A stretch of DNA of 64,000 bases. Source: Macrostomum lignano. Its lineage: Eukaryota. The stretch lies in NCBI GenBank assembly GCA_002269645.1, contig NIVC01000414.1, forward strand, positions 372,001 through 436,000. The letters run 5' to 3'. The notes beneath the pieces are model-generated. The model had not been told where the DNA came from and did no database searches. It saw nothing but the letters and a program-made list of their open reading frames with translations. This document shows, piece after piece, positions 4,515-61,900 of this stretch (position 1 is its first letter; every line of letters begins with the position of its first letter). Made by a program: the position numbers and the translations under genes.

Positions 4515-7500
4515 CTGGAGGGGAGAGTGGCGCTGAGAGTGGCGCTGAGAGTGGCGCTGAGAGTGGCGCTGGGAGTGGCGCTGAGAGTGGCGCTGGGAGT
4601 GGCGCTGGGAGTGGCGCTGAGAGTGGCGCTGAGAGTGGCGCTGAGAGTGGCGCTGGGAGTGGCGCTGGGAGTGGCGCTGAGAGTGGCGCTGAGAGTGGCG
4701 GAAAAAGTATTAACAGCTTCTGTTCCCACCTGAAATATTTTGGTGACATCAGGAATTCTGCACGGCCTTCCGTCCGAGCCGAACACGCAGTCCGGGCTGC
4801 CGTGAGCCATGAGGAAGCAGACAAAGCAGCCGTGCCGCTCCAGCTGGTCTGAGCAGCGCTGGAGCTGCATCAGGCATTGGAGAATTTCATTGGCTGTGAG
4901 GTCCTCCTCCAACTGCACGGTGAATCGCAGCTTTTGAAAGACTTCATTCACTCGCTGCACATCCAGCTGTGAGCCGTCGCGATCCTCATGAGTACTTGTG
5001 TACTTGTTGATGTTGATGATGAGGCAGAAGCCCTGCGGGTCCGTCACTGGGTAGAAAACTTCATCAAATCTGAAATGTCGCCAGAGTTTTTGCTGTGTTG
5101 CAGCTGTGTGTGCTGTAGCTGTGTGCTGTAGCTGTGTGTGCTGTAGCTGTGTGCTGTAGCTGTGTGCTGTAGCTGTGTGTGCTGTAGCTGTGTGCTGTAG
5201 CTGTGTGCTGTAGCTGTGTGTGCTGTAGCTGTGTGCTGTAGCTGTGTGCTGTAGCTGTGTGCTGTAGCTGTGTGTGCTGTAGCTGTTTGCTGAAGGAACT
5301 CACGGCGGTGCCAGAGGCTCGTCGAAGTAAATCTTGCCGTCGTACCTTAATAGACAATGCGGAGTCTGAAGTCAGGGGAACTCAGGTGAGAGACGATGTT
5401 CTGTGCTTTATTTCTTCTTTTTGCTTATATCAACTATGAAAAAATCGTAATTATTTTCTTTTATCTTACAGACAATTATCAGAAAATTGCATACGTTAAA
5501 ACTCAACTGCAATGTGCACAGCAAAATGCTTACTGGTGTCTCACAGCTCGCAGGCAGCTGAACATTAATATTCAACTGGCAATCTGCAGTCAAACTGCAC
5601 TGCAAACTCCCTCAATGCAGCTCAGTCAGTGTCTGCTGCCCATTTAAACTACAAAAATGTAAAAATGCCCAGTCAGAGCAACTGCAGTCAGCTGTTCAAT
5701 ATTCAATCATAAATTACAGAATAATGTTTATCGATGATAAATCAAAGTCAGAGAGACATTCTCAGTCGCCATGGAAACTCACCCACGCAGCAGCTCAGCC
5801 AGTTCGCTCCTTCTCTTCTCTGTGGCCAAATCCAGCGCTGTCCTGCCGTCTCTGTCCTTCAGGCTCCAATCCGCTTCTGAGTCCAGCAGAACCCGACCGA
5901 CTGCGGCGGCGGTGGCGGGGGGCGCAAAGGCTGCCCACATGAGGGGCGTCCAATCCTTTTGACTCTTGGTATTGGCGGAGGCTGCGGCAGCCGGCACAGC
6001 GGAGGCTCCGGCAGAATTGCTAGCATTGGCTGCACTGTGCAGTGAATGCATTCGGATACTCGTACAACGAACGCTCGGACATCAAAGGTCATTAATGCGC
6101 TAAGACAGCGATTTTGTGAAAAATCAGCACAAGAGATTCTTTGGTCCTACGGAGGACCTCAATTTAGCTAGGATTTGTTCACTGCTTTCTTGTGAAGATG
6201 GAAAGTGGAGCACAGAGTATCGTCTCCGACTTACAGAGCAATAGCAGAGCCAACAAGTCGGCAGTGAAGGAAATGAAAAAGCTTCTGCGAGGTTCATGGA
6301 ATCCGCAGTCAGAGAAGATCGACTGGGACAAGTTTTGCCAAGGAATATTGATATTTTGCTACACGCCAAGGTGGCTCGCCATGATGGCAAGTCGCCGGCG
6401 CAAATCCTGTTTGGCCACCCAGTCCGAGTTTTGCCAGCTCATAGACGATTTTTTGCAAAGGAATTGCAGAAAACAGCTGATCAAATTGAAGCCAAAGCAA
6501 CTAGTATGAGGGATAAAATTGTCCAACATTACAACAAGACAGCTTGTTGTAATTGAATTTCAAGTTTGCGCTTGCGCGTCACTCTGAGACAATTTTGGCC
6601 ACAGACAGTCTGAATTGAATTTTTTCTGTTTCAATAGAAAGGGACTTTGAATTTAATTTCCGCAAGCCCTAATATGCTTGTTTTTTTAAACAAGAAGGTA
6701 AAATGGTGTAGAAGATATAAATAATATATAAGAGCGAAGAGCCCGGCTAGAAAAGGGAATCAGATCCATCAACCATATTTGTGTCTCATTGAATATACAA
6801 CAGCCATGGAAACTCACCTACGCAGCAGCTCAGCGGCTTCGATATTTCCGTTCTCCACGGCCAAATCCAGCGGAGTCTTGCCGTCGTTGTTCTTAATGCT
6901 CCAATCCGCCCCTGCGTCCAGCAGAAGCCGAACGACTGCGGCGGCGGTGGCGGTGGGGGGCGCAAATTCGGCTGCCTCCATGAGGGACGTGTCTCCTAGC
7001 CCCGTGGCATTGGCGGAGGCTCCGGCACTCAGCAGAGCGGAGGCTGCGGCAGAATTGCCAGCCCGTGCTGCATGGTGCAGACAACTGCCAGCATATTTAT
7101 CTGCACAGGTGGGGTCACCCAGATGCACCAGCTGCTTCCACAGAGCCTCATCACCACACGATCTGCTGTGAGCTGCCCACATCAGCGAGGTGCGACCCCA
7201 TTTGTCAGGCAGGTCGCAGCTGTCGCGGGTCGCCGCTCGCCGCAGCCCCGCCGAGTCGCCCGCCTCGGCCAGCCGCTGCAGTTTCTGTCGATCCGCCTCC
7301 TCCTGCAAAGGGGAGCGGGAAAGTTGAGCACAGCTGCTCAGCTGCAGCCGCATCGGCACCGCAGATGCCGCTCACCTGGGCTGTAAGACCGGAGATCTTG
7401 CCATATGCATCCACAACCAGCCGCATCTCCCTGCAACAGCAAAAATGAGCAGCGAATTTTGCAATTTTCTCAAATCCAATTCAAATGCGATCGCCAAAAT

Positions 7501-8909
7501 ATATGTTTTTGTTTTACAATAAAATTTTAATAATAGACTAAATAATCAGAAATTCCTAATTATCTGAGCTGCTCGCAGATGGAGTTTCCAAGAGGACTGC
7601 AGCAGCACTGCAACAATCAGCATTGGCGAGAGCGCATCCGACTTCTCACACGCAGCTCATTTTCCATTTCTGCAGCATGAGTTTCCTTCCATCTCACAAT
7701 GTCTCACAAAGCACTCACGCACAGCCTCCCAGTTCTCCATCTGCAGCTCAACCCACACACTCTCACTGCACACCGAGGCCCTACAGCTTCCATTCTCGAC
7801 TGAGATCGACCGGCACCCCATTGGCTGTGAGGCAGCCAGCCAATCACAGCTCTCGCCCATCAAGCAGTCAGACAGAGACAAGCTCAGCTGACTGGCTCTG
7901 ATTGGCTGGCCTGAGACTGCAGCTCTGGCCACCCCAGCCGAATGCTGCAAAACTTGATGGACACAGCAGCGAACTGCTCACTCACCGCTCGATGTAGCTG
8001 GCCAGCTCTGAGTGGCCGCTGAGCCTCGCCAGGTCCGACGCTGTCCGACTCTCGCGATTCTTCAGTCCGAGCAGCTCCGACCTCTTCGAGTTTCCGTGCT
8101 CAGAGCACTCATTGAACCTTATCTGCCTGAGCAGGTGCAGCAGGTGCTTAGCGCATTTCCAGCTTCCAGTCCGCGCCGCCTCCATCAGCGGAGTGGCGCC
8201 GTTTTTGTTCCGCAGCCACTTCGCATCGAACGACAGCAGCGTCAGCAGCCGCAGGTGGTCCCGCCGGGCTGCCAGGTGCGCAGCCGTGTCGCCGTTCGCG
8301 TCAGCCGCCTTGGGGTTCGCGCCCAGCTCAAATAAGTACAAGATGCACTTTTCAGTGTGCACGGGAGTCTCAGGAGCGCCGAACACCCGCATGAGGACGT
8401 TCCGACGAGCTGCATTAGCGCAAGTAACCAGCTGGCGCGTTGCCAGCTGCGGCACCTGGCCGAAGTCACCTCGGATGACGAGCTGGGCGAGAATCGTTAT
8501 GTCCAATTGCTAATAGGACAAATAACGAAAATGGAACTCAAGTTTCATTGCGGAAAATTGCGCGTTTGATAAATAGTAAAATTAAGAATGTGAGCGCTAT
8601 CGTTTTTTGATATGCGACATGTTTCGGTTCGCGTCAGGCATCGTCAGGGTCTTAAAATTAGCAACGATTTATTTCTGTATTTATTAACCGTATATATATA
8701 AATTTAGACGTGAAACGGGGTCGATAAAAATCAGAAATGTAAATTAAATATACAGTAGATTGCAAGGTCTAGCTTAGTAAATTTTTCGCAAATAATTTTC
8801 CACCATTCATAAGAGCTCAAACGAGTACAAACTAAAAGTGCTTAAGTCCCTGTATATAAAATTGCGTTAATCAATACTAAATAAACAACTTGTCAATAAT
8901 GGTGCCGGT

Positions 8910-8962
<53 letters not shown>

Positions 8963-11900
8963 GCCAATCGGGTGCACCAGAACCTTCGGCTAAAAGCTAA
9001 GTCAGCGACTGCGCCTTGCTTAGTTCTCGATCTACGAGTATTTAATGGCAGTTTTCTGACCATGTCAGGCGACTGTCAGGCCAACTTTTATCATTGAATT
9101 CCCCCGCAACACCACAAACGTGGCCGCCAGTTCAACTTGACCTTCCGCTGGACTCACGAAGATCCCAACAGCGGTGCCACCGGGGCTTTCTTGGCCCCAT
9201 CTGCACCTAGTGCCACCAAGACTGCCATTCCCAGCACCGTAATCTCTCTGGCTACAAGCCTGGCACCAGTCGATCTCGACGAGAGCGCCCAATCTGCCAA
9301 ACATCGTAGGATCTCAGAGGTCGTCTGCTCTAACGTGGAGGACATCACCACGACAGCCAGCACGATCGCAGCAACAAACAATGAATCCACGGCTAGCATG
9401 AGCACGGAGACCAACGCCGACTCGGTAGCGGACGGCGCTATTGGGGACGTGGCAGCGAGCGCCGATGCGACGATCAGCAACGACCCGCCAGCGGTTGCGG
9501 TTGGGGCTCCGGTAGGCAGTCCGGCGGCCGGTGGGACCACCGAAGTCGCCTCACCCGACAACGGCTGTACGTCGGCGGCTGACGACCTTTTTGTGACCCC
9601 GCCTCTTCCACGGGTGGGACTGCCTGCTTCACCTGCTGAACGTCGCTTACCATCGCCGGACTCTGAGGACTCCCCTGGTGGTCCGGAACGCCACAGGCCG
9701 CATCTGAATGACTCACCTTTGAGCAGCCCGGTACGCTCATCATCAGCAGGGACTTCCGGAACCTGGTCCTCTGCCCAAAGCCTTTCGAGGGCCTCAAACT
9801 GCTGGCAATCACAGAGGTGCATGAGTACTAAATGTCAGCCTTACCATCACTACGAAGGTCGGCCGCCCTGCGGAACCGGCAATGCGCTCAGTCAACGGTG
9901 CTGGTCCTGGCGGACGAGCTGCTCAGCACAGACCACTGGCGAGAGTCGCTCTCTGAGGCCATCGATCTACTGAGAGATCCTTCTTGTTCCGCCCTTTGCC
10001 AGCGGTGAAGGATTGACTCAAATTCTGAGTAAGAAACTCTCACCTATTAGAGAAATGAAGGCCAACACCAACATATAATAAATTATTTTAATAGCCAACG
10101 CGTTTCGACACAAGCGGTCGTCTTCAGGGCTTGCACTCATGATTCACATACAGTTCAGTATACTTAAATAGAGAAAATCAAGATCTGTACATGGCAATAG
10201 ACAAATGGGTTCAGTCCGGTCGATAATTGTACATTACGAGACGAAACTATAATAAATTATTTGGCCATCACACAGAAAACACCTCTCGCCAATAGCAGCC
10301 CGCCCCCCTTCATGGGGAAATCAGTAAAGGAGGTTCCCTCAAAACGTAGAAGGGATGAGTGCAACTTGTTTGTGCTTGAGAACCAAAAACTGGTAGAGAA
10401 TTTGACAACGGTACAGATCAAAGGCAACCTAGAGGTGCCAGAGACCAAAGCGATTCAGGGGCTCAAGCGAAACAGCTCCGTCCTTATAAAAAGCCGGACA
10501 AAGGCAACGCAGTGGTCATCATGCACCCTAATGATTACGAATTTGCAGCCTACAACCAATTGCTTGACACTAATGCCTATCAACAGCTGGACCAGCCACT
10601 GCAACCCGAGACTGTGGAACTTATTAGGGGGATCTTCCTCGATTTATGTAACAGAAAGTTCATATCTAAGAAACAGTTTTCTTTTCTTTGTCCCGGAGAG
10701 AACTTCCGTCCCCGGCATTTCTACCTGCTCCCAAAAATTCACAAGGACCCGGCCACCTGGCTGATCCCCTTTCGGGTCCCAGCAGGCAGACCTATTGTTA
10801 GCGGATGCAGTTCTGAAGCAATTGGGGCAGAAAAGTACATAGACTTCTTTCTAAAACCGATTGCCCAAGCGCAACCCACTTTCATTAAGGACTCCTATGA
10901 CTTCAAGGCACACCTTATGGATAAAAGCTGCAAGGAAGGTTCGACTCTGGCAACTTGTGATGTCCAGAGTCTGTACTCCATAATCCCAATAGATCAGGGC
11001 ATTGCAGCGATCCAGGAATTCTTTAACCGATACCCGGATCCCATTAGACCGGATGCTGAAATAATAAAGCTACTGGAATTGTGTTTGTACAGGAATGACT
11101 TCGAATTTGACAAAATGATTTTCCTACAACTTAGAGGTACAGCCATGGGGCGCATATTTGCGCCCAGCTATGCCTGCCTCTTCATGAGCCTCTGGGAGGA
11201 AACTGCCCTGAGAACTGCTCTTTATAAGCCCAACATCTATTTTAGGTACATAGATGATATCTTCATTCACTGGGACCACCCGGCTGAAGCTCTGACAGAA
11301 TTTGTTGTACACCTAAATTCAATCAACCCCAACATCAAACTCACCGTCAGCTCCTCATCAACTGAGGTCAGTTTTCTTGACATGACCATCAAGAAAGCTG
11401 AAAACCGCTTCACAACACAACTGTTTTCAAAAGAAACAGACACTCATAGATTGTTGCACCGACAGTCCTTCCATCCGTCACACACCTTCAAGGGGGTAGT
11501 AAAATCCCAAATCCTTCGGTACGCTCGAATCTGTGATGACTACAAGTCTTTCAACGATGCTTTCAATTCTTTAAAATCGGAACTCAAGCAATTAGGCTAC
11601 TCGAAGATTTTTCTTAGAAACTGCAAAAAGGAGGTCCTCAAACTTATGAACTGGACTGCAGGACCAACGACCAATCTGTGTTTGCTTCCCAAAGGGTTCC
11701 ATCCCTGTGGGTCATCCCGCTGCAAATGCTGCACCCACTCACCGCCTGCTCTCTCCGCCCAGGGGCTGAAACCGGCTTCCGATGTTTTAGTCTCTCAGAG
11801 CCTGTCCTGTGGCTCCAAGAACATCATCTATGGCATCTCCTGTAACCAGTGCCACCCTGGGAAAATCTTCTATGTAGGTATGACTAGAAGAACAATGAGA

Positions 11901-12435
11901 GATAGAATGAACCAGCACAGGTCAAATATTAACAGGAGAATCGTTACTTCGGGGTTAGAGCACTTTCTCACTCCCAATCACTCGATTGCAAACTTTTTCT
12001 CCATTGCTATCGAACAAGTTCTTAATAGCAACAAAATCGAACTAAGGGAATAAATCTGGATTAAAAACTGGGGACTGACAAACCGCCGAATGCGAGCATC
12101 AGGGTCGACAATCACCTTCTCCGACCCATCCCATTGGTCCTTCCTTTTCACCCATCTACGGTCTGGCTTTCCAACGAGATAGCTAAAAACTTTGATAAGC
12201 TACAAAATAAACCATGCTCCCGCTAGACGAAACAGGCAGTACATCCCTCATATGTACTCGTACAAGTACTCATCAATTTTATCAGACTCAGAAAAATTAC
12301 TTAAAAGACCTATTTGCATTGCATTACGGCCTGACGAAGAGCCCAGAGGCTCGAAACCGGTAGCCCATATTCAATATTTTCAACACGCCGTTACCTCTCT
12401 TCTCTCTCTACCTCTCTCTCTCTAATCTCTCTCCA

Positions 12436-12492
<57 letters not shown>

Positions 12493-12505
12493 CCATCTCT
12501 CTCTT

Positions 12506-12570
<65 letters not shown>

Positions 12571-13435: not shown

Positions 13436-15380
13436 TGGCAGATAGAACATACAGATAGAAGATACAGATAGAACATACAGATAGAAGATACAGATAGAAC
13501 ATACAGATAGAAGATACAGATAGAACATACAGATAGAAAATACAGATAGAACATACAGATAGAACATACAGATAGAACATACAGATAGAACATACAGATA
13601 GAACATACAGATAGAAAATACAGATAGAACATACAGATAGAACATACAGATAGAACATACAGATAGAAAATACAGATAGAAAATACAGATAGAACATACA
13701 GATAGAACACCCAGATAGAACATACAGATAGAACATACAGATAGAAAATACAGATAGAAAATACAGATAGAACATACAGATAGAACATACAGATAGAACA
13801 TACAGATAGAACATACAGATAGAAAATACAAATAGAACATACAGATAGAACACCCAGATAGAACACCCAGATAGAACACACAGATAGAACATACAGATAG
13901 AACATACAGATAGAACATACAGATAGAACATACAGATAGAACATACAGATAGAACATACAGATAGAACATACAGATAGAAGATACAGATAGAACATACAG
14001 ATAGAACATACAGATAGAACATACAGATAGAACATACAGATAGAACATACAGATAAAAGATACAGATAGAAGATACAGATAGAAGATACATATAGAACAT
14101 ACAGATAGAACATACAGATAGAACATACAGATAGAACATACAGATAGAAGATACAGATAGAAGATACATATAGAACATACAGATAGAACATACAGATAGA
14201 ACATACAGATAGAAAATACAGATAGAAAATACAGATAGAACATACAGATAGAACATACAGATAGAACATACAGATAGAACATACAGATAGAACATACAGA
14301 TAGAAGATACAGATAGAAGATACAGATAGAAGATACATATAGAACATACAGATAGAACATACAGATAGAACATACAGATAGAACATACAGATAGAAGATA
14401 CAGATAGAAGATACATATAGAACATACAGATAGAACATACAGATAGAACATACAGATAGAACATACAGATAGAAGATACAGATAGAAGATACATATAGAA
14501 CATACAGATAGAACATACAGATAGAACATACAGATAGAACATACAGATAGAACATACAGATAGAAAATACAGATAGAACATACAGATAGAACACCCAGAT
14601 AGAACATACAGATAGAACATACAGATAGAACATACAGATAGAACATACAGATAGAAGATACATATAGAAAATACAGATAGAACATACAGATAGAACACCC
14701 AGATAGAACATACAGATAGAACATACAGATAGAAAATACAGATAGAAAATACAGATAGAACATACAGATAGAACACCCAGATAGAACATACAGATAGAAC
14801 ATACAGATAGAACATACAGATAGAACATACAGATAGAACATACAGAAAGAACATACGGATAGAACATACGATAGAACATACAGATAGAACATACAGATAG
14901 AACATACAGATAGAACATACAGATAGAACACACAGATAGAACATACAGATAGAACATACAGATAGAACATACAGATAGAAAATACAGATAGAACATACAG
15001 ATAGAACATACAGATAGAACATACAGATAGAAAATACAGATAGAAAATACAGATAAAACATACAGATAGAACACCCAGATAGAACATACAGATAGAACAT
15101 ACAGATAGAAAATACAGATAGAAAATACAGATAGAACATCCAGATTGAAAATACAGATAGAAAATACAGATAGAACATACAGATAGAACACCCAGATAGA
15201 ACACACAGATAGAACATACAGATAGAACATACAGATAGAACATACAGATAGAACATACAGATAGAACATACAGATAGAACATACAGATAGAACATACGAT
15301 AGAACATACAGATAGAACATACAGATAGAACACACAGATAGAACATACAGATAGAACATACAGATAGAACATACAGATAG
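13436..15380. repeat. 13-bp tandem array (GAACATACAGATA), about 150 copies
   Basis: 13-nt period; the translated ORF repeats every 13 aa (CSICMFYLYVLSV). Confidence 0.97.
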
Positions 15381-15687
15381 AGCATCTTTCGCAGAAAGGA
15401 CATGTACAATGTACATGTACTTTGCACGATTCTCATGGACTCCAGAGAGTGCACAGCGCCGAACGTCCACCAGATGCCATCGCCCACGTAGTCTGCCCGA
15501 GACAGACCTCTGCCGTCATTGCTTGCCTTCAGAGGAACTATGGAACTTCTGCTGCTCCTATTTCTGGCTGCGCCGGTGCCTTCTAAGAGCAGCACAGCCC
15601 GTTGATACATGCAAACTGTGCGCTCATTTCTGACTGCAGTATTCTGTCTGTGAGAGTTGAGACAGCACCCTGGCAGCAGAGAGCAGC

Positions 15688-18600
15688 CTCTATTCACTGG
15701 TTTGTGTCCGGTTCTACTCACTGGTTTGTGTCCGGTTCTATTCACTGGTTTGTGTCCGGTTCTATTCACTGGTTTGTGTCCGGTTCTATTCACTGGTTTG
15801 TGTCCGGTTCTATTCACTGGTGTGTGTCCGGTTCTATTCACTGGTTTGTGTCCGGTTCTATTCACTGGTTTGTAGCCGGTTCTATTCACTGGTGTGTGTC
15901 CGGTTCTATTCACTGGTGTGTGTCCGGTTCTATTCACTGGTTTGTGTCCGGTTCTATTCACTGGTGTGTGTCCGGTTCTATTCACTGGTTTGTGTAAGGT
16001 TCTATTCACTGGTTTGTGTCCGGTTATATTCACTGGTGTGTGTCCGGTTCTATTCAATGGTGTGTGTCCGGTTCTATTCACTGGTTTGTGTCCGGTTATA
16101 TTCACTGGTGTGTGTCCGGTTCTATTCACTGGTGTGTGTCCGGTTCTATTCACTGGTGTGTGTCCGGTTCTATTCACTGGTTTGTGTCCGGTTCTATTCA
16201 CTGGTTTGTGTCCGGTTCTATTCACTGGTTTGTGTCGGGTTCTATTCACTGGTGTGTGTCCGGTTCTATTCACTGGTTTGTGTCCGGTTATATTTACTGG
16301 TGTGTGTCCGGTTCTATTCACTGGTTTGTGTCCGGTTCTAAACACTGGTTTGTGTCTGGTTCTATTCACTGGTTTGTGTCCGGTTATATTCACTGGTGTG
16401 TGTCGGGTTCTATTCACTGGTGTGTGTCCGGTTCTATTCACTGGTTTGTGTCCGGTTATATTCAATGGTGTGTGTCCGGTTCTATTCACTGGTGTGTGTC
16501 CGGTTCTATTCACTGGTGTGTGTCCGGTTCTATTCACTGGTTTGTGTCCGGTTCTATTCACTGGTTTGTGTCCGGTTCTATTCACTGGTTTGTGTCGGGT
16601 TCTATTCACTGGTGTGTGTCCGGTTCTATTCACTGGTTTGTGTCCGGTTATATTTACTGGTGTGTGTCCGGTTCTATTCACTGGTTTGTGTCCGGTTCTA
16701 AACACTGGTTTGTGTCTGGTTCTATTCACTGGTTTGTGTCCGGTTATATTCACTGGTGTGTGTCGGGTTCTATTCACTGGTGTGTGTCCGGTTCTATTCA
16801 CTGGTTTGTGTCCGGTTATATTCAATGGTTTGTGTCCGGTTCTATTCACTGGTGTGTGTCCGGTTCTATTCACTGGTTTGTGTCCGGTTCTATTCACTGG
16901 TTTGTGTCCGGTTCTATTCACTGGTTTGTGTCCGGTTCTAAACACTGGTTTGTGTCTGGTTCTATTCACTGGTTTGTGTCCGGTTCTATTCACTGGTGTG
17001 TGTCGGGTTCTATTCACTGGTTTGTGTCCGGTTCTATTCACTGGTTTGTGTCTGGTTCTATTCACTGGTTTGTGTCGGGTTATATTCACTGGTGTGTGTC
17101 GGGTTCTATTCACTGGTGTGTGTCCGGTTCTATTCACTGGTTTGTGTCCGGTTATATTTACTGGTGTGTGTCCGGTTCTATTCACTGGTTTGTGTCCGGT
17201 TCTAAACACTGGTTTGTGTCCAGTTCTATTCACTGGTGTGTGTCGGGTTCTATTCACTGGTTTGTGTCCGGTTCTATTCACTGGTTTGTGTCCGGTTCTA
17301 TTCACTGGTGTGTGTCCGGTTCTATTCACTGGTGTGTGTCCGGTTCTATTCACTGGTTTGTGTCCGGTTCTATTCACTGGTTTGTGTCCGGTTCTATTCA
17401 CTGGTTTGTGTAAGGTTCTATTCACTGGTTTGTGTCCGGTTATATTCACTGGTGTGTGTCCGGTTCTATTCAATGGTGTGTGTCCGGTTCTATTCACTGG
17501 TTTGTGTCCGGTTCTATTCACTGGTGTGTGTCCGGTTCTATTCACTGGTGTGTGTCCGGTTCTATTCACTGGTTTGTGTCCGGTTATATTTACTGGTGTG
17601 TGTCCGGTTCTATTCACTGGTTTTTGTCCGGTTCTATTCACTGGTTTGTGTCCGGTTCTATTATTCACTGGTTTGTGTCCGGTTCTATTATTCACTGGTT
17701 TTTGTCCGGTTCTATTCACTGGTGTGTGTCGGGATCTATTCACTGGTTTGTGTCCGGTTCTATTCAATGGTTTGTGTCCGGTTCTATTCACTGGTGTGTG
17801 TCTGGTTCTATTCACTGGTTTGTGTCCGGTTCTATTCACTGGTTTGTGTCCGGTTCTATTCACTGGTTTGTGTCCGGTTCTAAACACTGGTTTGTGTCTG
17901 GTTCTATTCACTGGTTTGTGTCCGGTTCTATTCACTGGTGTGTGTCGGGTTCTATTCACTGGTTTGTGTCCGGTTCTATTATTCACTGGTTTGTGTCCGG
18001 TTCTATTATTCACTGGTTTGTGTCCGGTTCTATTATTCACTGGTTTTTTGTCCGGTTCTATTCACTGGTTTGTGTCCGGTTCTATTATTCACTGGTTTGT
18101 GTCCGGTTCTATTATTCACTGGTTTGTGTCCGGTTCTATTATTCACTGGCTTGTGTCCGGTTCTATTCACTGGTGTGTGTCCGGTTCTATTCACTGGTTT
18201 GTGTCCGGTTCTATTCACTGGTGTGTGTCCGGTTCTATTCACTGGTTTGTGTCCGGTTCTATTCACTGGTTTGTGTCCGGTTCTATTCACTGGTGTGTGT
18301 CCGGTTCTATTCACTGGTTTGTGTCCGGTTCTAAACACTGGTTTGTGTCTGGTTCTATTCACTGGTTTGTGTCGGGTTATATTCACTGGTGTGTGTCGGG
18401 TTCTATTCACTGGTGTGTTTCCGGTTCTATTCACTGGTTTGTGTCCGGTTATGTTTACTGGTGTGTGTCCGGTTCTATTCACTGGTTTGTGTCCGGTTCT
18501 AAACACTGGTTTGTGTCTGGTTCTATTTACTGGTTTGTGTCCGGTTATATTCACTGGTGTGTGTTGGGTTCTATTCACTGGTGTGTGTCGGGTTCTATTC

Positions 18601-35168: not shown

Positions 35169-35827
35169 GGAAAAGTCGTCAGGTTCCACTTTGATTGATT
35201 CGTCACGAAAAGCTCACTAAATAGCGACAGAAGCTGATGGCAAACAGCAAAGAGCTTGAGTACAGATTGGCATTTGAGCAGCTTCACAGCTTGAGGGTGG
35301 GCAGAGAGTAAAAGATTGTTGCGAAAGAGAAAGCAGAGAAAAGGAAACAGCTAAAAAGTTGGCGCTTGAAATGAGAAAAGTTCATGGGTGCATCTGGCAC
35401 TCAGTCACGGGGGAATCGAAGCTTTTTGGCCCATCTATGCCTGCGGCAAATTTATACAAAAGTTCTGGAATAAATTGTTTGAAAAGTTGGAAAAGTTGAG
35501 TAGGCTTTCTTAAAACTTAAATCAACAAATTTTAATGGTTTAACAAATTTCCAGATTTACTCCAGATCCGAGAAAATTCCGTCTGCTAGAAAGTATCCCC
35601 CATGCCCGCATATCCGTGTTCTGAAAAAGTATTTGTCATTTGATTCGAACAATCAAAGCGCCACTTGAAGTACAGAGTTAGGGAAAGTTCAAAAGCCAAG
35701 TATTGCACGCTAGACTGCTAAAAAAAGAAGTTTTCGATCAATTTCAATTTACGCGTACCATGCGTATAAAAAATCTTCACAGACAGTTTTTCAAGCATCT
35801 CGGCTTAGAGCTGCGACTCAGAAAATT

Positions 35828-35870
35828 CCCGTCAGGAACTCGTGCTTCAGCAGCTGCTGTGCTGACTTTC
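35828..35870 (-). pseudogene. Remnant of kinase C-terminus (SAQQLLKHEFLTG)
   Basis: Matches SAHELLEHEFLTG of the intact kinase. Flank 35770-35835 matches 49300-49385. Confidence 0.65.
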
Positions 35871-36218
35871 GCTCGCTGTTTTATTGTAAAAATCTGTAAT
35901 ATTAACAGAAAATAACAAAGAAAGTTCAGATGTTAAAGTTAAACTTAACTGTCACAGCAAAATGCTTGCTGGTCTCTCACAGCTCGCAGGCAGCTGAACA
36001 TTAATATTCAACTGGCAATCTGCAGTCAAACTGCACTGCAAACTCCCTCAATGCATTTCAGTCAGTCCCTGCTGCCCATTTAAACTACAAAAATGTAAAA
36101 ATGCCCACTCAGAGCAACTGCAGTCAGCTGCTCAATATTCAATCATAAATTACAGCATAATGTTTATCAATGATACATCAAAGTCAGAGAGACATTCTCA
36201 GTCGCCATGGAAACTCAC

Positions 36219-38304
36219 CCACGCAGCAGCTCAACCAGTTCGCTCTTTTCCCACTTTGTGGCCAAACGCAGCGCAGTCTTGCTGAATTTGTCCTTCAGGC
36301 TCCAATCCGCCCCTGAGTCCAGCAGAACCCGACCGACTGCGGCGGCGGTGGCGGGGGGCGCAAAGGCTGCATGCATGAGGGGCGTGAATTCACACAGACC
36401 CCTGGCATTGGCGGAGGCTCCGGCAGACAGCAGAGCGGAGGCTGCGGCAGAATTGCCAGCCCTGGCTGCCCACTGCAGGTAACTGATACCCCATATATTC
36501 GCACAGGTGGGGTCACCCAACTGCACCAGCTGCTCCCACAGAGCCTCATCACCGCACGAGCTGTTTCCAGCTGCCAACATCAACGCGGTGACACCCAAAC
36601 TGTAAGGCAGGTCGCAGTTGCCGCGGTTCGCCGCTCGCCGCAGCCCTGCCGAGTCGCCCGCCTTGGCCAGCCGCTGCAGTTCCTGTCGATCCGTCTCCTC
36701 CTGCAAAGGCGAGCGGGAAATTTGAGCACAGCTGCTCAGCTGCAGCCGCATCGGCACCGCAGATGCCGCTCACCTGATCTGTCAGGCCGGAGATCTCGCC
36801 ATGTGCATCCACAACCAGCCGCATCTCCCTGCAACAGCAAAAATGAGCAGCGAATTTGCAATTTTCTCAAATCCGACAACTACGATCGCGAAAACAATTT
36901 TGTAGTTGTAAATTTAGAATTTAGTAAACAGAAATTCTTAATTCTCTGAGCTGCTCGCAGATGGAGTTTTTGAGAGGACTGCAGCAGCTCTGCAACAATC
37001 AGCATTGGCGAGAGCGCATCCGACTTCTCACACGCAGCTCATTTTCCATTTCTGCAGCATGAGTTTCCTTCCATCTCACAATGTCTCACAAAACACTCAC
37101 GCACAGCCTCCCAGTTCTCCATCTGCAGCTCAACCCACACACTCTCACTGCACAGCGAGGCCCTACAGCTTCCATTTTCGACTGAGATCAACCGGCACCT
37201 CATTGGCTGGGAGGCAGCCAGCCAATCACAGCTCTGCCCCATCAAGCAGTCAGACAGAGACAAGCTCAGCTGACTGGCTCTGATTGGCTGGCCTGAGACT
37301 GCAGCTCTGGCCACCCCAGCCGAATGCTGCAAAACTTGATGGACACAGCAGCGAACTGCTCACTCACCGCTCGATGTAGCTGGCCAGCTCTGAGTGGCCG
37401 CTGAACCTCGCCAGGTCCGACGCCGTCCGACCCTCGAGATCTTTCTTTTTGAGCAGCCGCGACCTCTTCAAGTTTCCTTGCCCAAAGCACCCATTGAGCC
37501 CGTACTGCCAGAGCAGGTGCAGCAGGTGCTTGGCGCATTTCCAGCTTCCAGTCCGCGCCGCCTCCATCAGCGGAGTGGCGCCGTTGTCGTTCCGCAGCCA
37601 CTTCGCATCGAACGACAGCAGCGCCAGCAGCCGCAGGTGGTCCCGCCGGGCTGCCAGGTGCGCAGCCGTGTCGCCGTTCGCGTCAGCCGCCTTGGGGTTC
37701 GCGCCCAGCTCAAATAAGTACAAGATGCACTTTTCAGTGTGCACGGGAGTCTCAGGAGCGTCGGCCGCCAGCATGAGGACGGTCCGACGAGCTGCATCAG
37801 CGCTGGTGACCAGCTGGCGCGTTGCCAGCCGTTGCACCCGGCCGAAGTCACCTCGGATGACGTCGTGGGCGAGAGTCTGGAGATCGGCTGGTGAGTCTCC
37901 GACGCTTGCCCGGTTGCTGGGGTCCGGCTGAGTGAGTTTCTGCAACTGCAATTGAGGCATCCAAGCTGCACATTCAAACATGTGAGTGAGTTCCTGCAAC
38001 TGCAATTGAGGCACCCAAGCTGCACATTCAAACATGTGAGTGAGTTCCTGCAACTGCAATTGAGGCACCCAAGCTGCACATTCAAACATGTGAGTGAGTT
38101 GCTGCAACTGCAATTGAGGCACCCAAGCTGCTCATTCAAACATGTGAGTGAGTTGCTGCAACTGCAATTGAGGCACCCAAGCTGCACATTCAAACATGTG
38201 AGTTCCTGCAACTGCAATCAAGCCAACAGATATTATTATGCTTTCAGTTCTTTACTCGAACTTACTTTCTCGTCAGGAAATGGTGGTTTGCCTTGCCAAG
38301 CCAT
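36219..38304 (-). CDS. ANK gene copy 3 lacking linker and effector exons. Exons: 38266-38304, 37368-37939, 36774-36828, 36219-36700
   Basis: MAWQGKPPFPDEK|GTAAGT; exons A, 55-nt and B are open with canonical phase-matched splice sites. No linker exon follows. May be a pseudogene or an ANK-only gene. Confidence 0.75.
37930..38215. repeat. 54/50-bp tandem repeat containing the exon A splice acceptor
   Basis: Unit GAGTGAGTTCCTGCAACTGCAATTGAGGCACCCAAGCTGCACATTCAAACATGT, about 5 copies. Confidence 0.9.
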
Positions 38305-49374: not shown

Positions 49375-49680
49375 ATCCGTCAGGAACTCGTGATCCAGCA
49401 TCTTCTGTGCTGAGCTTCTCCCTGCTGTCCTTGACTGTGCAGCGGCTGTAGAAATCCCTCAGCTCTGTGGACCCGCCGTCCGGCTTGACTTGACTTGATA
49501 AATGCTTTGAGTTCCCCTGAACGGCCTCGCGCCGGAGGCTATCTGGAAGACCGAGCAGCCGAACGCCCAGATGTCCGACTCTCTGCTGTACTGCACGCTG
49601 TCCGACTCTCCCGCTCCGAGCAGCTGTGGTGACATGAAGTTCAGAGTGCCTTTGGGTGACTGAGTGGAGGCTGACATTCC
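49375..49680 (-). pseudogene. Kinase C-lobe pseudogene fragment, paralogous to 54918-55454
   Basis: SPKGTLNFMSPQLLGAGESDSVQYSRESDIWAFGCSVFQIASG, then an internal deletion and ELRDFYSRCT. N-lobe and HRD/DFG motifs are absent. Confidence 0.85.
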
Positions 49681-54917: not shown

Positions 54918-55937
54918 TCATTTCCTTGCACTAAAAAACGAGCTGAAGAATCCAGGCTGCAGCTTCCTGCCCGTCAGGAACTCGTGCTCCAGCAGCTCAT
55001 GCGCGGATCTTCTCCTCCTGCGGTCCTTGGCGGTGCAGCGGCTGTAAAAATCCCTCAGCTCTGCGGACCGGCCGTCCGGCAGGGCGGGGACGCCCTTCCT
55101 GTCGATCAGCTGGGCCATTTCTAACAGGCTTTTGGCGTTCGCGAACGGCCTCACGCCGGACGCCATCTGAAAGACCGAGCAGCCGAACGCCCAGATGTCC
55201 GACTCTCTGCTGTACTGCAAGCTGTCTGACTCTCCCGCTCCGAGCAGCTCCGGCGCCATGAAGTTCAGAGTGCCTTTGGGTGACGGAGTGGAGGCTGAGA
55301 TGTGGCTGACTGACTGCTCCAGCTTGATTGACAGGCCGAAGTCGATCAGCTTGATTTGCGTGTTGTCAGCACAAACAATTATGTTCGAGCAGTTGATGTC
55401 TCTGTGGATAACGAGCGGCTGCCGGCTGTGCAGGTAGAGCAGCGCGCGGCAGATCTGCGAGCGGTCGGTCAGTGAGCAGTCATCATTCATGGGAACATGG
55501 AACAGGAGCATCAAGGATGCACAATGCTCACCTGCTCGCTGAAGTCTCGAATCTTTGGCTCGTCCAGCGGCTTGTTGTCGATAAACCTCTCCAAGCTTCG
55601 GCCGTCCAGCAGCTCCATGAACACAACGACTGCGGCGGGCTCCGGCTGAGCGATGTGCAAGAACCTGACGATGTTGGGATGCCGCAGTCGGCACAGGTTT
55701 CTCTCGCTCTCGACAGCTCTGTGAATCTCTGTGCTCACAGAGGTTTGGTCATCACCGAGCTGCACAGGCAGTCTGAGAGTCTTGGCAGCGCACGTGACGC
55801 CCGTGTCAGTTCGAACTTCGTGGACCTCGCCGAAGCCTCCGCGGCGGATGAGGCGAAGGGCATCCCAGCGCTCCAGGAACGGGGGACCTTCGGGTCTGAG
55901 GGGATGCGGATTCAGGCAATGAGGGATAATTTGCATG
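54918..55937 (-). CDS. MEKK/STE11-like protein kinase domain, two exons with a 77-bp intron at 55455-55531
   Basis: GGFGEV, AAK, E..L.RLRHPNIVRF, FMEL, HRDINCSN, KLIDFG, GTLNFMAPE, SDIWAFGC, LLEHEFL. The intron has CAG|GTGAGC and CGCAG|ATC. Confidence 0.93.
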
Positions 55938-58900
55938 CTGTAGCTGTGTGTGCTGTAGTTGTAGCTGCTGTAGCTGTGTGTGCTGTAGCTGTGTGCTGTA
56001 GCTGTGTGTGCTGTAGCTGTGTGCTGTAGCTGTGTGCTGTAGCTGTGTGCTGTAGCTGTGTGCTGTAGCTGTGTGCTGTAGCTGTGTGCTGTAGCTGTAT
56101 GCTGTAGCTGTCTGCTGTAGTCTTTTTAACAGTACAGTAATTATTTTGTGTGCTGAAGGAACTCACGGCAGTGCCAGAGGCTCGTAGAAGTAAATCTTGC
56201 CGTCGTACCTAAATAGGCAGAGCGGAGTCTGAGGTCAGAGGGAATTCAGTTGAGAGCCACGTAGAATACAAAAAGCTTCAAAAAAATTACCCAAATTTAC
56301 TCAAACAAGTGTATTGTCTCACAGCTCGCATTAAAATTCAACTGGCAATCTGCAGTCAAACTGCACTGCAAACTCCCTCAATGCAGCTCAGTCAGTGTCT
56401 GCTGCCCATTTAAACTACAAAAATGTAAAAATGCCCACTCAGAGCAACTGCAGTCAGCTGCTCAATATTCAATCATAAATTACAGCATAATGTTTATCAA
56501 TGATAAATCAAAGTCAGAGAGACATTCCCAGTCGCCATGGAAACTCACCCACGCAGCAGCTCAGCCAGTTCGCTCTTTCCTTTCTGTGTGGCCAAATCCA
56601 GCGCAGTCCTGCCGTCTCTGTCCTTCAGGCTCCAATCCGCCCCTGAGTCCAGCAGAACCCGGCCGACTGCGGCGGCGGCGGAGGGGCGCGCACAGATGGC
56701 TGCCGACATGAGAAGCGTGAATTCCCACATACTAGTGGCATTGGCGGAGGCTCCGGCAGACAGCAGAGCGGAGGCTGCGGCAGAATTGCCAGCCCTGGCT
56801 GCCCGGAGCAGGATACTGTCAGCATCTACATCCGCACAGGTGGGGTCACCCAACTGCACCAGCTGCTCCCACAGAGCTTCATCACCGCACGAGCTGTTCT
56901 CAGCAGCCCACATCAACGCGGTGCAACCATCATTGTCAGGCAGGTCGCAGCTGTCGCGGGTCGCCGCTCGCCGCAGCCCCGCCAAGTCGCCCGCTTTGGC
57001 CAGCCGCTGCAGTTCCAGTCGTTCCGCCTCCTCCTGCAAAGGCGAGCGGGAAATTTGAGCACAGCTGCTCAGCTGCAGCCGCATCGGCACCGCAGATGCC
57101 GCTCACCTGGGCTGTCAGGCCGGAGATCTCGCCATCTGCATCCACAACCAGCCGCATCTCCCTGCAACAGGAAAAATGAGCTGCGAATTTGACATTTTCA
57201 AAAATCCGACATCTTCGACTGCTAAAACTAAATTCCTAGTTCTACGATAAAGTTTGCATGACAAATTTAGTGAACAGAAATTTCCCAATTATCTGAGCTG
57301 CTCGCAGCTGGAGTTTCCAAGAGGACTGCAGCAGCTCTGCAACAATCAGCATCGGCGAGAGCGCATCCGACTTCTCACACGCAGCTCATTTTCCATTTCT
57401 GCAGCATGAGTTTCCTTCCATCTCATAATGTCTCACAAAGCACTCACGCACAGCCTCCCAGTTCTCCATCAGCAGCTCAACCCACACACTCTCACTGCAC
57501 ACAGAGGCCCTACAGCTTCCATTCTCGACTGAGATCAACCGGCACCCCATTGGCTGGGAGGCAGCCAGCCAATCACAGCTCTCGCCCATCAAACAGTCAG
57601 ACAGAGACAAGCTCAGCTGACTGGCTCTGATTGGCTGGCCTGAGACTGCAGCTCTGGCCACCACAGCCGAATGTTGCAAAACTTGATGGACACAGCAGCG
57701 AACTGCTCACTCACCGCTCGATGTAGCTGGCCAGCTCTGAGTGGCCGCTGAGCCTCGCCAGGTCCGACGCCGTCCGACCCTCGAGATCTTTCTTTTTGAG
57801 CAGCCGCGACCTCTTCGAGTTTCCGTGCTGTCTGCACTCATTGAACATTGCTTGCCTGAGCAGGTGCAGCAGGTGCTTGGCGCATTTCCAGCTTCCAGTC
57901 CGCGCCGCCTCCATCAGCGGAGTGGCGCCGTTGTCGTTCCGCAGCCACTTCGCATCGAACGACAGCAGCGCCAGCAGCCGCAGGTGGTCCCGCCGGGCTG
58001 CCAGGTGCGCAGCCGTGTCGCCGTTCGCGTCAGCCGCCTTGGGGTTCGCGCCCAGCTCAAATAAGTACAAGATGCACTTTTCAGACTTGACGGGAGTCTC
58101 AGGAGCGTCGGCCGCCAGCATGAGGACGGTTCGACGAGCTGCATCAGCGCTGGTGACCAGCTGGCGCGTTGCCAGCCGTTGCACCTTGCCGAAGTCACCT
58201 CGGATGACGTCGTGGACGAGAGTCTGGAGACTAACCGATTCGTTTAGAAAGTAGCTGTAGCTGTGTGTGCTGTAGCTGTGTGCTGTAGCTGTGTGCTGTA
58301 GCTGTGTGCTGTAGCTGTGTGTCCTGTAGCTGTGTGCTGTAGCTGTGTGTCCTGTAGCTGTGTGTGCTGTAGCTGTGTGTTGTAGCTGTGTATGCTGTAG
58401 CTGTGTATGCTGTAGCTGTGTGCTGTAGCTGTGTGCTGTAGCTGTGTGTGCTGTAGCTGTGTGTGCTGTAGCTGTGTGTGCTGTAGCTGTGTGCTGTAGC
58501 TGTGTGTGCTGTAGCTGTGTGCTGTAGCTGTGTGCTGTAGCTGTGTGTGCTGCAGCTGTGTGTGCTGTAGCTGTGTGCTTTAGCTGTGTGCTGTAGCTGT
58601 GTGTGCTGTAGCTGTGTGCTGTAGCTGTGTGCTGTAGCTGTGTGTGCTGTAGCTGTGTGCTGTAGCTGTGTGCTGTAGCTGTGTGCTGTAGCTGTGTGTG
58701 CTGTAGCTGTGTGTGCTGTAGCCGTGTGCTGTAGCTGTGTGTCCTGTAGCTGTGTGCTGTAGCTGTGTGTCCTGTAGCTGTGTGTTGTAGCTGTGTATGC
58801 TGTAGCTGTGTATGCTGTAGCTGTGTGCTGTAGCTGTGTGCTGTAGCTGTGTGTGCTGTAGCTGTGTGTGCTGTAGCTGTGTGCTGTAGCTGTGTGTGCT

Positions 58901-61900
58901 GTAGCTGTGTGCTGTAGCTGTGTGCTGTAGCTGTGTGTGCTGCAGCTGTGTGTGCTGTAGCTGTGTGCTGTAGCTGTGTGCTGTAGCTGTGTGTGCTGTA
59001 GCTGTGTGCTGTAGCTGTGTGCTGTAGCTGTGTGCTGTAGCTGTGTGTGCTGTAGCTGTGTGTGCTGTAGCCGTGTGCTGTAGCTGTGTGTGCTGTAGCT
59101 GTGTGTGCTGTAGCTGTGTGCTGTAGCTGTGTGTGCTGTAGCTGTGTGTGCTGTAGCTGTGTGTGCTGTAGCTGTGTGCTGTAGCTGTGTGTGCTGTAGC
59201 TGTGTGCTGTAGCTGTGTGCTGTAGCTGTGTGTGCTGCAGCTGTGTGTGCTGTAGCTGTGTGCTGTAGCTGTGTGCTGTAGCTGTGTGTGCTGTAGCTGT
59301 GTGCTGTAGCTGTGTGCTGTAGCTGTGTGTGCTGTAGCTGTGTGCTGTAGCTGTGTGCTGTAGCTGTGTGTGCTGTAGCTGTGTGTGCTGTAGCCGTGTG
59401 CTGTAGCTGTGTGTGCTGTAGCTGTGTGTGCTGTAGCTGTGTGCTGTAGCTGTGTGTGCTGTAGCTGTGTGCTGTAGCTGTGTGCTGTAGCTGTGTGTGC
59501 TGTAGCTGTGTGTGCTGTAGCTGTGTGTGCTGTAGCTGTGTGTGCTGTAGCAAACTCACAGAGGATCCTGGAAGTAGCTGTCTCCTTCAAATCTGAAACA
59601 TGTAAACTGTATTATTTTAGAACTTTGGTCTTCTATAAAAAACAGTTTACTATTAAAAGTTAACGTAATCCTTACTTGAACAATTAATTATAAAATTTTT
59701 GTCGCTCGTAATATGTATTTTAATTAGTTGCTCTAATTAATCTTAAATAAACTGACATTCTCAGTCGCCATGGAAACTCACCCACGCAGCAGCTCAGCCA
59801 GTTCGCTCCTCTTCTCTGTGGCCAAACGCAGCGCAGTCTTGCTGAATTTGTCCTCCAGGCTCCAATCCGCCCCTGAGTCCAGCAGAACCCGACCGACTGC
59901 GGCGGCGGTGGCGGGGGGCGCAAAGGCTGCATGCATGAGGGGCGTGAATTCACACAGACCCCTGGCATTGGCGGAGGCTCCGGCAGACAGCAGAGCGGAG
60001 GCTGCGGCAGAATTGCCAGCCCTGGCTGCCCACTGCAGGTAACTGATACCCCATATATTCGCACAGGTGGGGTCACCCAGCTGCACCAGCTGCTCCCAAA
60101 GAGCCTCATCACCGCACGATCTGTTTCCAGCTGCCAACATCAACGCGGTGACACCCAAACTGTAAGGCAGGTCGCAGTTGCCGCGGGTCGCCGCTCGCCG
60201 CAGCCCTGCCGAGTCGTTCGCTTTGGCCAGCCGCTGCAGTTCCAGTCGTTCCGCCTCCTCCTGCAAAGGCAAGCGGGAAATTTGAGCACAGCTGCTCAGC
60301 TGCAGCCGCATCGGCACCGCAGATGCCGCTCACCTGGGCTGTCAGGCCGGAGATCTCGCCATCTGCATCCACAACCAGCCGCATCTCCCTGCAACAGGAA
60401 AAATGAGCTGCGAATTTGACATTTTCTCAAATTCTACAACCTCAATCGCTAAATCATAATCTTAAGTTGTAGGATTTAATTTTCATGAAAAATTTAGTGA
60501 ACAGAAATTCCTAATTATCTGAGCTGCTGGCAGATGGAGTTTCCAAGAGGACTGCAGCAGCTCTGCAACAATCAGCATCGGCGAGAGCGCATCCGACTTC
60601 TCACACGCAGCTCATTTTTCATTTCTGTAACATGAGTTTCCTTCCATCTCACAATGTCACACAAAGCACTCACGCACAGCCTCCCAGTTCTCCATCTGCA
60701 GCTCAACCCACACACTCTCACTGCACACCGAGGCCCTACAGCTTCCATTCTCGACTGAGATCAACCGGCACCCCATTGGCTGGAAGGCAGCCAGCCAATC
60801 ACGGCTCTCGCCCATCAAACAGTCAGACAGAGACAAGCTCAGCTGACTGGCTCTGATTGGCTGGCCTGAGACTGCACCTCGAGCTCGAGGACACCGTCAA
60901 AAATTCTGATTCGCTCTCGCTTTCGGTCGACCCACAGATAAAGTCAAGGACTCGCGGAAGTAGCGATTCACCGAAGCCAAACCTCGAAGCCTACGAGGAG
61001 CCGCTACCGTCAGAGATATTTGACCCGAGGATATACTTGGTCCCCAGTGTCTAGAAGTGAGAGTTTTTGAGTGACTAATCACCACTCTTAAATTTTTCAC
61101 ATTCACTCAGCCAGAGACAAGCTCAGCTGACTGGCTCTGATTGGCTGGCCTGAGAGTGCAGCTCTGGCCACCCCAGCCGAATGCTGCAAAACTTGATGGA
61201 CACAGCAGCGAACTGCTCACTCACCGCTCGATGTAGCTGGCCAGCTCTGAGTGGCCGCTGAGCCTCGCCAGGTCCGACGCCATCCGACCCTCGCGATCCT
61301 CCAGTCCGAGCAGCCGCGACCTCTTCGAGTTTCCGTGCTGTCTGCACTCATTGAACATTGCTTGCCTGAGCAGGTGCAGCAGGTGCTTGGCGCATTTCCA
61401 GCTTCCAGTCCGCGCCGCCTCCATCAGCGGAGTGGCGCCGTTGTCGTTCCGCAGCCACTTCGCATCGAACGACAGCAGCGTCAGCAGCCGCAGGTGGTCC
61501 CGCCGGGCTGCCAGGTGCGCAGCCGTGTCGCCGTTCGCGTCAGCCGCCTTGGGGTTCGCGCCCACCTCAAATAAGTACAAGATGCACTTTTCAGACTTGA
61601 CGGGAGTCTCAGGAGCGTCGGCCACCAGCATGAGGACGGTCCGACGAGCTGCATCAGCGCTGGAGACCAGCTGGCGCGTTGCCAGCCGCCGAACCTGGCT
61701 GAAGTCACCTCGGATGACGTCGTGGGCGAGAGTCTGGAGATCGGCTGGTGAGTCTCCGACGCTTGCTCGGTTGGTGGGGTCCGGCTGAGTGAGTTCCTGC
61801 AACTGCAATTGAGGCACCCAAGCTGCACATTCAAACATGTGAGTGAGTTCCTGCAACTGCAATTGAGGCACCCAAGCTGCTCATTCAAACACGTGAGTGA

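Follow-up and report, generated by a model that had tools for sequence, protein, structure and literature searches.

Why should tandem gene copies that share almost the same introns and the same protein framework differ so strongly at a few regularly spaced residues? This question is raised by a group of ankyrin (ANK) repeat genes in 64,000 nucleotides of DNA from the flatworm Macrostomum lignano (contig NIVC01000414.1, positions 372,001 to 436,000), a satellite-rich eukaryotic stretch with a GC content of about 50% to which we refer as the window. Self-BLAST after masking revealed four tandem paralogues on the minus strand (genes A to D) and a partial exon duplicate. Two database proteins are 100% identical to products of the window, P0027 for gene C and P0037 for gene B, and therefore the window is M. 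lignano DNA. Our analysis indicates that this is probably a tandem cluster of a Macrostomum-specific gene family in which the diversified surface encoded by one exon, exon B, forms a recognition repertoire. Strong diversifying selection on the beta-turn tips and the end of helix 1 encoded by this exon (ANK positions 2, 3, 5, 10, 13 and 14, which make up the canonical target-binding face) is supported by the codon data, and recognition specificity, as proposed in a first-pass annotation of this DNA, would be the target of that selection as far as can be judged from the sequences.

The paralogous blocks are about 1.7-2.3 kb in size (A, ~6.8-8.5 kb; B, 36-38 kb; C, 56.3-58.2 kb; D, 59.7-62 kb; a partial fifth copy, also on the minus strand, lies at 5.5-6.0 kb) and have a common layout, in which exon A is followed by an intron of ~550 nt, a 55-nt mini-exon, a 73-nt intron and exon B. 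Exon A (~516 nt), the conserved ANK half, ends with the residues ASYIER at a CG/GTGAGT donor, the mini-exon encodes EMRLVVDADGEISGLTAQ, and exon B (~480 nt; acceptor AG/GAGGAG, donor G/GTGAGT) encodes four to five ANK repeats. Both large exons match Pfam ankyrin models; the Ank_2 E values are 1e-13 (exon A) and 3e-19 (exon B). Gene A consists of exon A (7985..8500), the mini-exon (7376..7430) and an exon B of type DKWGRT/DKYAGS/TGLGDT (6818..7302) that matches the gene model P0025 at 91% and the genomic locus L003 at 98%. In gene B the same exons lie at 37367..37882 (100% identical to P0037), 36774..36828 and 36219..36700, the last being of type YSLGVT/NIWGIS/RGLCEF. Gene C has exon A at 57714..58229 (100% identical to residues 1-136 of P0027), the mini-exon at 57107..57161 and an exon B of type DNDGCT/DVDADS/TSMWEF at 56549..57033, also identical to P0027. 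For gene D, exon A was placed at 61224..61739 by tblastn and alignment (donor CG/GTGAGT; its 5' boundary is uncertain), the 55-nt mini-exon at 60334..60388, spliced as in P0007 and P0018, and exon B at 59782..60260 with an intact open reading frame (ORF), an AG/GAG acceptor and a G/GTGAGT donor.

The first-pass annotation had described the span 6818-60260, which runs from the 3' end of exon B in gene A to the 5' end of exon B in gene D, as near-identical ANK exons with hypervariable positions on an otherwise almost invariant scaffold. The scaffold motif SCGDEALW starts at 7161, 36559, 56892 and 60119 of the minus strand, and AARAGNSAAASALLSAGASANA is the same in copies A, B, C and D. All the peptides quoted in that annotation are present on the minus strand at the coordinates it gave, DKWGRT, DKYAGS and TGLGDT in copy A and DNDGCT, DVDADS and TSMWEF in copy C. 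The existence of multiple exon B types was also borne out, but the window holds only three of them plus the partial copy, since B and D both carry YSLGVT, NIWGIS and RGLCEF, and the repeat-3 variant KSQKDW (at 5967) belongs to the partial exon B duplicate downstream of copy A. Similarly, the claim of near-invariant introns and flanks holds for most of the flanking sequence but not for the AT-rich 3' end of intron 1 or for the stretch 3' of exon B in copies A and D, which have diverged. Pairwise nucleotide distances in the window were 0.125-0.167 for exon B between distinct types (0.035 for the B-D pair), 0-0.04 for the 73-nt intron 2 and 0.025-0.05 for the first 400 nt of intron 1, and scaffold codons and most of the flanking intron diverge by 2-9%. 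As a separate observation, the first ~400 nt of intron 1 (57164-57713 and equivalents) are 90-96% conserved among paralogues on different contigs, in a comparison that took in L001 and L003-L007, which exceeds the conservation of many exon B codons; this block contains a 106-codon open frame in all window copies and is deleted in L001 and partly in L005.

The location of the variability within the repeats was analyzed in 13 genomic copies of exon B, the four of the window and nine others, found on further M. lignano contigs and on a single metagenome contig. The ANK register was set a priori by consensus alignment, and the secondary structure of an AlphaFold2 model later agreed with it. Variability was maximal at ANK positions 2, 3, 5, 13 and 14, plus position 10. 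The clustering of differences at the turn and first helix was far beyond chance, as mean entropy at the positions randomised in designed ankyrin repeat proteins (DARPins; 2, 3, 5, 13, 14 and 33) was 2.0 bits compared to 0.55 elsewhere (Mann-Whitney p = 6e-11). These positions, which the first-pass annotation had recognised as those of designed binders, made up 15 of the 21 most variable columns (hypergeometric p = 4e-12). Position 10 is highly variable although it lies outside the DARPin set, and position 33 occurs in one repeat only and is invariant there. In a wider alignment of 28 family proteins, 24 of the 30 most variable residues fall in exon B, the aromatic residues Y, W and F are enriched 2.6-4.4 times at the most variable columns and 21 distinct hypervariable signatures were found. 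Exon A provides an internal control: the same register positions (DANGDTAAHLAARRDH, NDNGATPLMEAARTGS) are invariant there among close paralogues. In these two exon A repeats, positions 2-3 vary in the wider family whereas positions 5, 13 and 14 do not, and D99 (position 2 of the second of the two) is among the 30 most variable residues.

This pattern has its counterpart in the codon models, which were fitted by likelihood to the 13 sequences (GY94-F3x4, neighbour-joining tree) with the DARPin positions plus position 10 as a class defined a priori. The ratio of nonsynonymous to synonymous rates (dN/dS, ω) was 1.03 for the whole of exon B under M0, while the partition model gave ω = 5.24 for this class and 0.67 for the background (likelihood-ratio test statistic, LRT, against ω = 1, 160). 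M2a was preferred to M1a (LRT 177, p = 3e-39) with 13% of sites at ω = 7.3, so that the site models returned the dN/dS above 1 at turn and helix-1 sites that the first-pass annotation had proposed to look for. Fifteen sites had a posterior above 0.95 (repeat 1, positions 2, 5, 13 and 15; repeat 2, positions 2, 3, 10 and 25; repeat 3, positions 3, 4, 10, 13 and 14; repeat 4, positions 2 and 3); ten of them are DARPin-randomised positions and the remainder include position 10 of two repeats. Pairwise Nei-Gojobori (NG86) estimates for the window copies gave whole-exon ω values of 1.2-1.9 and dN of 0.57-0.71 at the DARPin positions. Furthermore, substitutions were not evenly spread over scaffold, silent and intron sites, and dN at the DARPin sites (0.45-0.92) was 11-28 times the intron divergence (0.025-0.05) and ~3-6 fold above the interleaved synonymous divergence, and binomial tests against deliberately high neutral rates gave p values from 4e-8 to 7e-12.

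The fine structure of this variation bears on another explanation, according to which the differences would reflect locally targeted mutagenesis, or the decay of redundant young duplicates. The codons of positions 2, 3 and 5, with one to three base differences each, alternate with invariant codons: GGT encodes G4 in 13/13 copies, while T6 (ACC), A11 (GCA) and A12 (GCT) keep their codon in 12/13. Since third positions are invariant in these interleaved codons, selection appears to act on the protein, rather than local hypermutation on the DNA. Furthermore, the variability keeps a 33-residue structural register over four successive repeats, unlike a DNA-level hot spot. Decay would find some support in the effector-less genes B and D described below and in the kinase fragments with stops that lie nearby, and mutagenesis in the raised apparent synonymous rate of the hypervariable class (r = 3.1). 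However, exon B is open in 13/13 copies, its splice sites are conserved and all its indels preserve the frame, which also led us to discard a pseudogene reading of the exons, and we regard mutagenesis or decay as highly improbable.

Diversifying selection on the exon B surface has nevertheless to be qualified, and several points weigh against it or reduce its strength. When the synonymous rate was allowed to be class-specific, it was ~3 times higher in the hypervariable class and ω fell to 1.7 (p = 0.04). The tree-based tests ignore recombination, which is present, and the background ω is high (0.67), so overall constraint is weak. Additionally, the contrast between scaffold and variable sites may come partly from gene conversion homogenising the scaffold, and not from acceleration alone. 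At amino-acid-invariant codons, A, B and C showed 0/27 differences per synonymous site in the N-cap, 0/62 in the helix 2 and loop segments and 4/38 in the turn and helix 1; in 11 non-redundant sequences the same measure was 0.06, 0.12 and 0.22, respectively. A naive count within the hypervariable codons also gave many synonymous differences and a local dN/dS of ~1. We did not keep dS from those codons as a neutral reference, because identical residues were often reached via different nonsynonymous paths and because the amino-acid-invariant codons interleaved with them show low synonymous divergence.

Some of these observations would be expected under concerted evolution with relaxed constraint, in which the turn and helix-1 residues are an unconstrained surface that retains older neutral divergence while the rest of the exon is homogenised, with no positive selection. 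In line with it are the reduced ω and the fact that, where the residue is invariant, synonymous divergence in the turn and helix 1 is about double that in helix 2. In this regard, gene D is a recombinant, a clear mosaic of C and B. Exon A and the mini-exon resemble those of C, as do the two margins of exon B (four informative sites at its start and three at its end), whereas ~50 consecutive informative sites in the core of exon B are B-like. A B-like core within C-like flanks indicates that a conversion of cassette size carried the whole hypervariable region. Intron 1 of gene D also bears a 224-nt insertion (61103-60881) that is absent from the other copies. Scaffold and introns are about 91-98% identical even between copies on different contigs, which fits recent expansion, homogenisation or both. 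For finer, patch-by-patch shuffling, the pairwise homoplasy index (PHI) recombination test (p = 0.28) and Mantel comparisons of the repeat patches gave no signal either way, probably through saturation of the variable sites. Conversion tracts, however, cannot skip single codons, and the interleaved third positions are identical in 12-13 of the 13 copies; nonsynonymous divergence at the variable sites exceeds both the synonymous and the intron divergence by the factors given above; the invariance of the same register positions in exon A indicates that a surface turn is not unconstrained just for being one; and the variable sites are enriched in aromatic residues. The alternation at codon boundaries within a 33-residue register is therefore explained neither by a mutational hot spot nor by escape from gene conversion, and we consider relaxed constraint unlikely as an account of the diversified surface.

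The variable residues were also placed on a predicted structure. The AlphaFold2 model of the ANK region, built with a 28-sequence alignment, has a predicted local distance difference test (pLDDT) score of 93.3 and a predicted template modelling (pTM) score of 0.91, and its paired helices fit the ANK register. It consists of two ANK sub-domains joined by a hairpin encoded by the mini-exon and a long helix. On this model, the variable sites map to the loops that precede helix 1 and to the C-terminal end of that helix, as expected from the register. The best PDB matches found by Foldseek were rigid DARPin-DARPin fusions, pairs of tankyrase ankyrin repeat clusters (ARCs) and ankyrin-1/B. The family shares with DARPins a constant ANK framework with diversity at positions 2, 3, 5, 13 and 14 of the concave face. 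By analogy, different exon B variants would bind different targets through the variable surface, for which the enrichment of Y, W and F at the variable sites is indirect support. The Macrostomum family differs from DARPins in being a natural, germline-encoded set of paralogues fused to enzymes, with putative target binding. In addition, its variability includes position 10 and a residue inserted in repeat 3, and the repeats have 32-40 residues with insertions.

How widely is this gene family distributed? With exon B as query, matches were confined to M. lignano proteins and two short environmental contigs, and the nine relatives obtained showed no kinase or caspase fusions; a full-length query was required, and retrieved ~55 M. 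lignano proteins, followed only by generic ANK proteins with <=30% identity. The other family proteins in the database carry a kinase, a caspase or no effector, depending on the member, and ANK-only members are represented by genes B and D and by P0020, P0024 and P0030. L003 (assembly GCA_002269645.1) corresponds to 5-13 kb of the window at 97-98% identity; it is the same locus, as a second haplotype or homeologue of gene A. An assembly or haplotype artefact was considered as a source of the copies and ruled out, since the contiguous window contains all four copies, their flanks differ and L003, 98% identical to gene A, has the same hypervariable residues. An environmental sequence (L002, a 720-nt ENA metagenome contig) is 81% identical at the DNA level; it spans the mini-exon and the 73-nt intron and continues into an intact exon B that has hypervariable residues of its own. 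It presumably derives from another Macrostomum-like worm in the sample, and suggests that the family is older than M. lignano.

The full-length comparison revealed an effector context that is new relative to the first-pass annotation: the ANK module forms the N-terminal portion of genes in which it is fused to a caspase or a kinase. The family is modular, with a conserved ANK half, a hypervariable ANK half, a linker and then a caspase, a kinase or nothing. The conserved linker (consensus GY[DE]GKxYF[DE]EP) follows the ANK region. In gene A it is encoded by a tail exon on the minus strand (GYDGKIYFDEPLAPP, 5304..5345, donor CC/GTGAGT) and followed by three caspase exons (~5071-4730, 4505-4431 and 4363-4094; Peptidase_C14, E = 1e-46) with intact catalytic His (FLMAHG) and QACRG motifs. 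The nearest solved structures are caspase-3 and caspase-8; in a word-seeded homology search M. lignano caspases ranked first, and the nearest relatives outside Macrostomum were caspase-3 and caspase-8-like proteins. Between exon B and the tail, gene A also includes exon A2 (5783..6034, minus strand), a partial duplicate of exon B (repeats 3-4) detected by self-BLAST that is spliced after exon B in P0025 and adds two ANK repeats with their own variable residues (KSQKDWTPLMWAA...). The Ala/Ser-rich start of exon A2 has a repeat number different from that in the NCBI model P0025. In gene C, the tail exon (GYDGKIYFYEPLALP, 56167..56208, minus strand) is homologous to that of gene A; this YFYE variant was missed by the pattern search and found through the reading frames. 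It leads to two kinase exons (~55909-55529 and 55457-54921, minus strand) that match P0027 at 100% (Pkinase, E = 7e-49). The G-loop GRGGFGEV and the CAAK, HRD, DFG and APE motifs are present, the nearest solved structures are MAP3K5/ASK1, PAK (PAK1) and TNIK, and by its sequence the effector is a STE/MAP3K-like kinase.

Two details of the effectors are to be added to the points that temper the proposed recognition function. Ser/Thr kinases normally have HRDxKxxN, with a Lys in the catalytic loop; the loop of gene C reads VIHRDINCSN (55383-55412), with Asn for the usual Lys, so its activity is uncertain, and HRDINCSN is also found in the paralogue P0045. The splice joining ANK and caspase in gene A, which is in frame from the tail exon across a satellite-bearing intron, was deduced from the frame and from paralogous models, and the NCBI model of this locus, P0025, does not extend to the caspase; a single polypeptide with ANK and caspase is predicted by the models P0028, P0041 and P0053.

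The exchange of effectors can be located. A 13/15-nt satellite (TGTGTGCTGTAGC) occupies the intron between tail and caspase exons in gene A (5092..5292) and the intron between linker and kinase exons in gene C (55936-56120). The homology of A to C ends at this satellite, therefore the swap between caspase and kinase happened there. The same satellite is expanded to 1.3 kb (58254-59551) directly after gene D, which has no effector and is followed by gene C. Gene B lacks both a tail exon and an effector, and an 18-residue vestige of a kinase C-terminus (NSERKSAQQLLKHEFLTG, 35827..35880, minus strand) lies just downstream of it. A degenerate fragment at 49381-49677, about 50% identical to the kinases of the family (54.5% to P0027, 49% to P0045), has an in-frame stop. 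These two remnants are evidence of effector loss.

The DNA around the genes shows further features. A 54-nt minisatellite lies immediately 5' of exon A in gene B (37929-38218) and gene D (61786-62183). It is in frame with exon A, its 18-residue unit (HMFECAAWVPQLQLQELT) includes an ATG and the start of database gene models falls within it (WVPQLQLQELTQPDP...), so it may represent an N-terminus of variable copy number. The interval between genes B and A is occupied by two adjoining arrays, a 17-kb array of ~710 copies of a 24-nt satellite with extreme AT skew (TCTATTCACTGGTTTGTGTCCGGT, 15689-32724) and a 2-kb array of a 13-nt satellite (CAGATAGAACATA, 13439-15385). On the plus strand, long ORFs with reverse-transcriptase domains at 43124-45106 (RVT_1, E = 7e-31) and 10512-12050 (weak, 4e-6) are retroelements that inserted between the ANK genes.

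The architecture of the family also bears on what the exon B surface recognises. The most likely role, judging from the sequences, would be recognition of fast-changing partners, either pathogen or other non-self molecules or selfish elements. Selection could also be real while the family is no foreign sensor, if the surface tracked fast-evolving endogenous partners, for example by pairing with expanding Macrostomum proteins, by regulating caspases or kinases, or through reproductive or sexual-conflict proteins. Caspases are among the proteins that ANK domains, DARPins included, can bind and regulate (cited in PMC11463336), the family has ANK-only members and M. lignano has many recent duplicates, with the L003 locus 97-98% identical to the window. 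Fusion to death or signalling effectors and their combinatorial swapping are, however, more typical of surveillance systems such as the NOD-like receptors (NLRs) of fungi (PMC4986451), and we see endogenous partners as an improbable main target.

A mechanism for the proposed recognition of fast-changing partners can be outlined. Exon A provides a conserved half, the mini-exon a beta-hairpin and connecting helix, and exon B the four-to-five-repeat half that varies. Framework, synonymous sites and introns have stayed 91-98% identical because the copies are young, are homogenised by gene conversion, or both, while gene conversion has occasionally shifted whole hypervariable cassettes between paralogues and effector modules have been exchanged at the satellite-bearing intron. 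Each exon B surface would then bind a different ligand, giving a germline-encoded repertoire of specificities, and ligand binding may control the attached effector, for instance by proximity-induced activation of the caspase leading to cell death or by kinase signalling. ANK-only members could be decoys or regulators. In its most specific form, which we put forward tentatively and hold to be possible rather than likely, this would be a new kind of animal intracellular recognition system in which a germline repertoire of hypervariable ANK 'paratopes' is fused directly to a caspase or MAP3K-like kinase, with no nucleotide-binding oligomerisation domain (NOD), death-fold or adaptor domain between them, so that ligand binding itself would trigger death or stress signalling, and new specificities and effector combinations would arise from tandem duplication, from conversion of cassettes and from exon shuffling mediated by the satellite.

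A repeat scaffold with its binding face under diversifying selection is a hallmark of recognition systems, among them the NLRs of plants and fungi and the variable lymphocyte receptors (VLRs) of lampreys. The effectors of fungal NLRs include metacaspase-like proteases. We know of no animal family in which ankyrin repeats are used in this way, and a full-text literature search found no description of the Macrostomum family or of a comparable animal ANK repertoire. With the leucine-rich repeats (LRRs) of plant NLRs and with lamprey VLRs, as generally known, the family shares a solenoid scaffold that is variable on the ligand face, tandem clusters and conversion or cassette exchange, but its repeats are ANK and not LRR, and it shows no evidence of somatic assembly. 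In principle, the nearest analogue is found among fungal NLR or signal transduction ATPase with numerous domains (STAND) proteins, whose ANK, tetratricopeptide (TPR) and WD repeats are highly conserved, with positively selected concave positions in the ANK repeats (Dyrka et al. 2014, PMC4986451), and which show signs of concerted evolution and recombination and combinatorial effector domains including kinases (PMC4986451). Conserved repeats, a selected concave face, recombination and assorted effectors are thus common to both. In fungi, however, the diversity lies between repeats and alleles within a locus, whereas in Macrostomum it lies between tandem paralogues, in an animal, with the effector C-terminal to the repeats and without NACHT or NB-ARC. 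Neither domain occurs in the Pfam lists of all family proteins, which contain only Ank, Pkinase and Peptidase_C14 models, or in the window genes, whose Pfam search likewise gave no domains beyond these three. Membership in the NLRs was consequently ruled out, as a NOD domain is lacking.

Among flatworms, caspases with an ANK pro-domain were reported to be confined to parasitic species, and an M. lignano caspase with a kinase-like pro-domain was placed next to the ANK-caspase clade (PMC11463336). In the predicted Macrostomum fusions, as in these caspases, an ANK region lies N-terminal to the caspase domain in a flatworm. They differ in that no hypervariability or paralogue repertoire was reported there (PMC11463336) and in that other Macrostomum genes combine the ANK module with a kinase or have no effector. 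No schistosome ANK caspases were among the matches of the word-seeded caspase-domain search.

Lastly, innate immunity and non-self recognition are poorly understood in flatworms, and M. lignano is a tractable model in which RNA interference (RNAi) and transgenesis are available. If the proposed recognition function is correct, at least 20 natural ANK specificities with interchangeable caspase and kinase effectors would constitute a testable candidate for a sensor-effector system in this animal. It would also help to explain why flatworms have the odd 'ANK caspases'. Furthermore, the family would be a natural counterpart to engineered DARPins, revealing which framework and which positions evolution uses.

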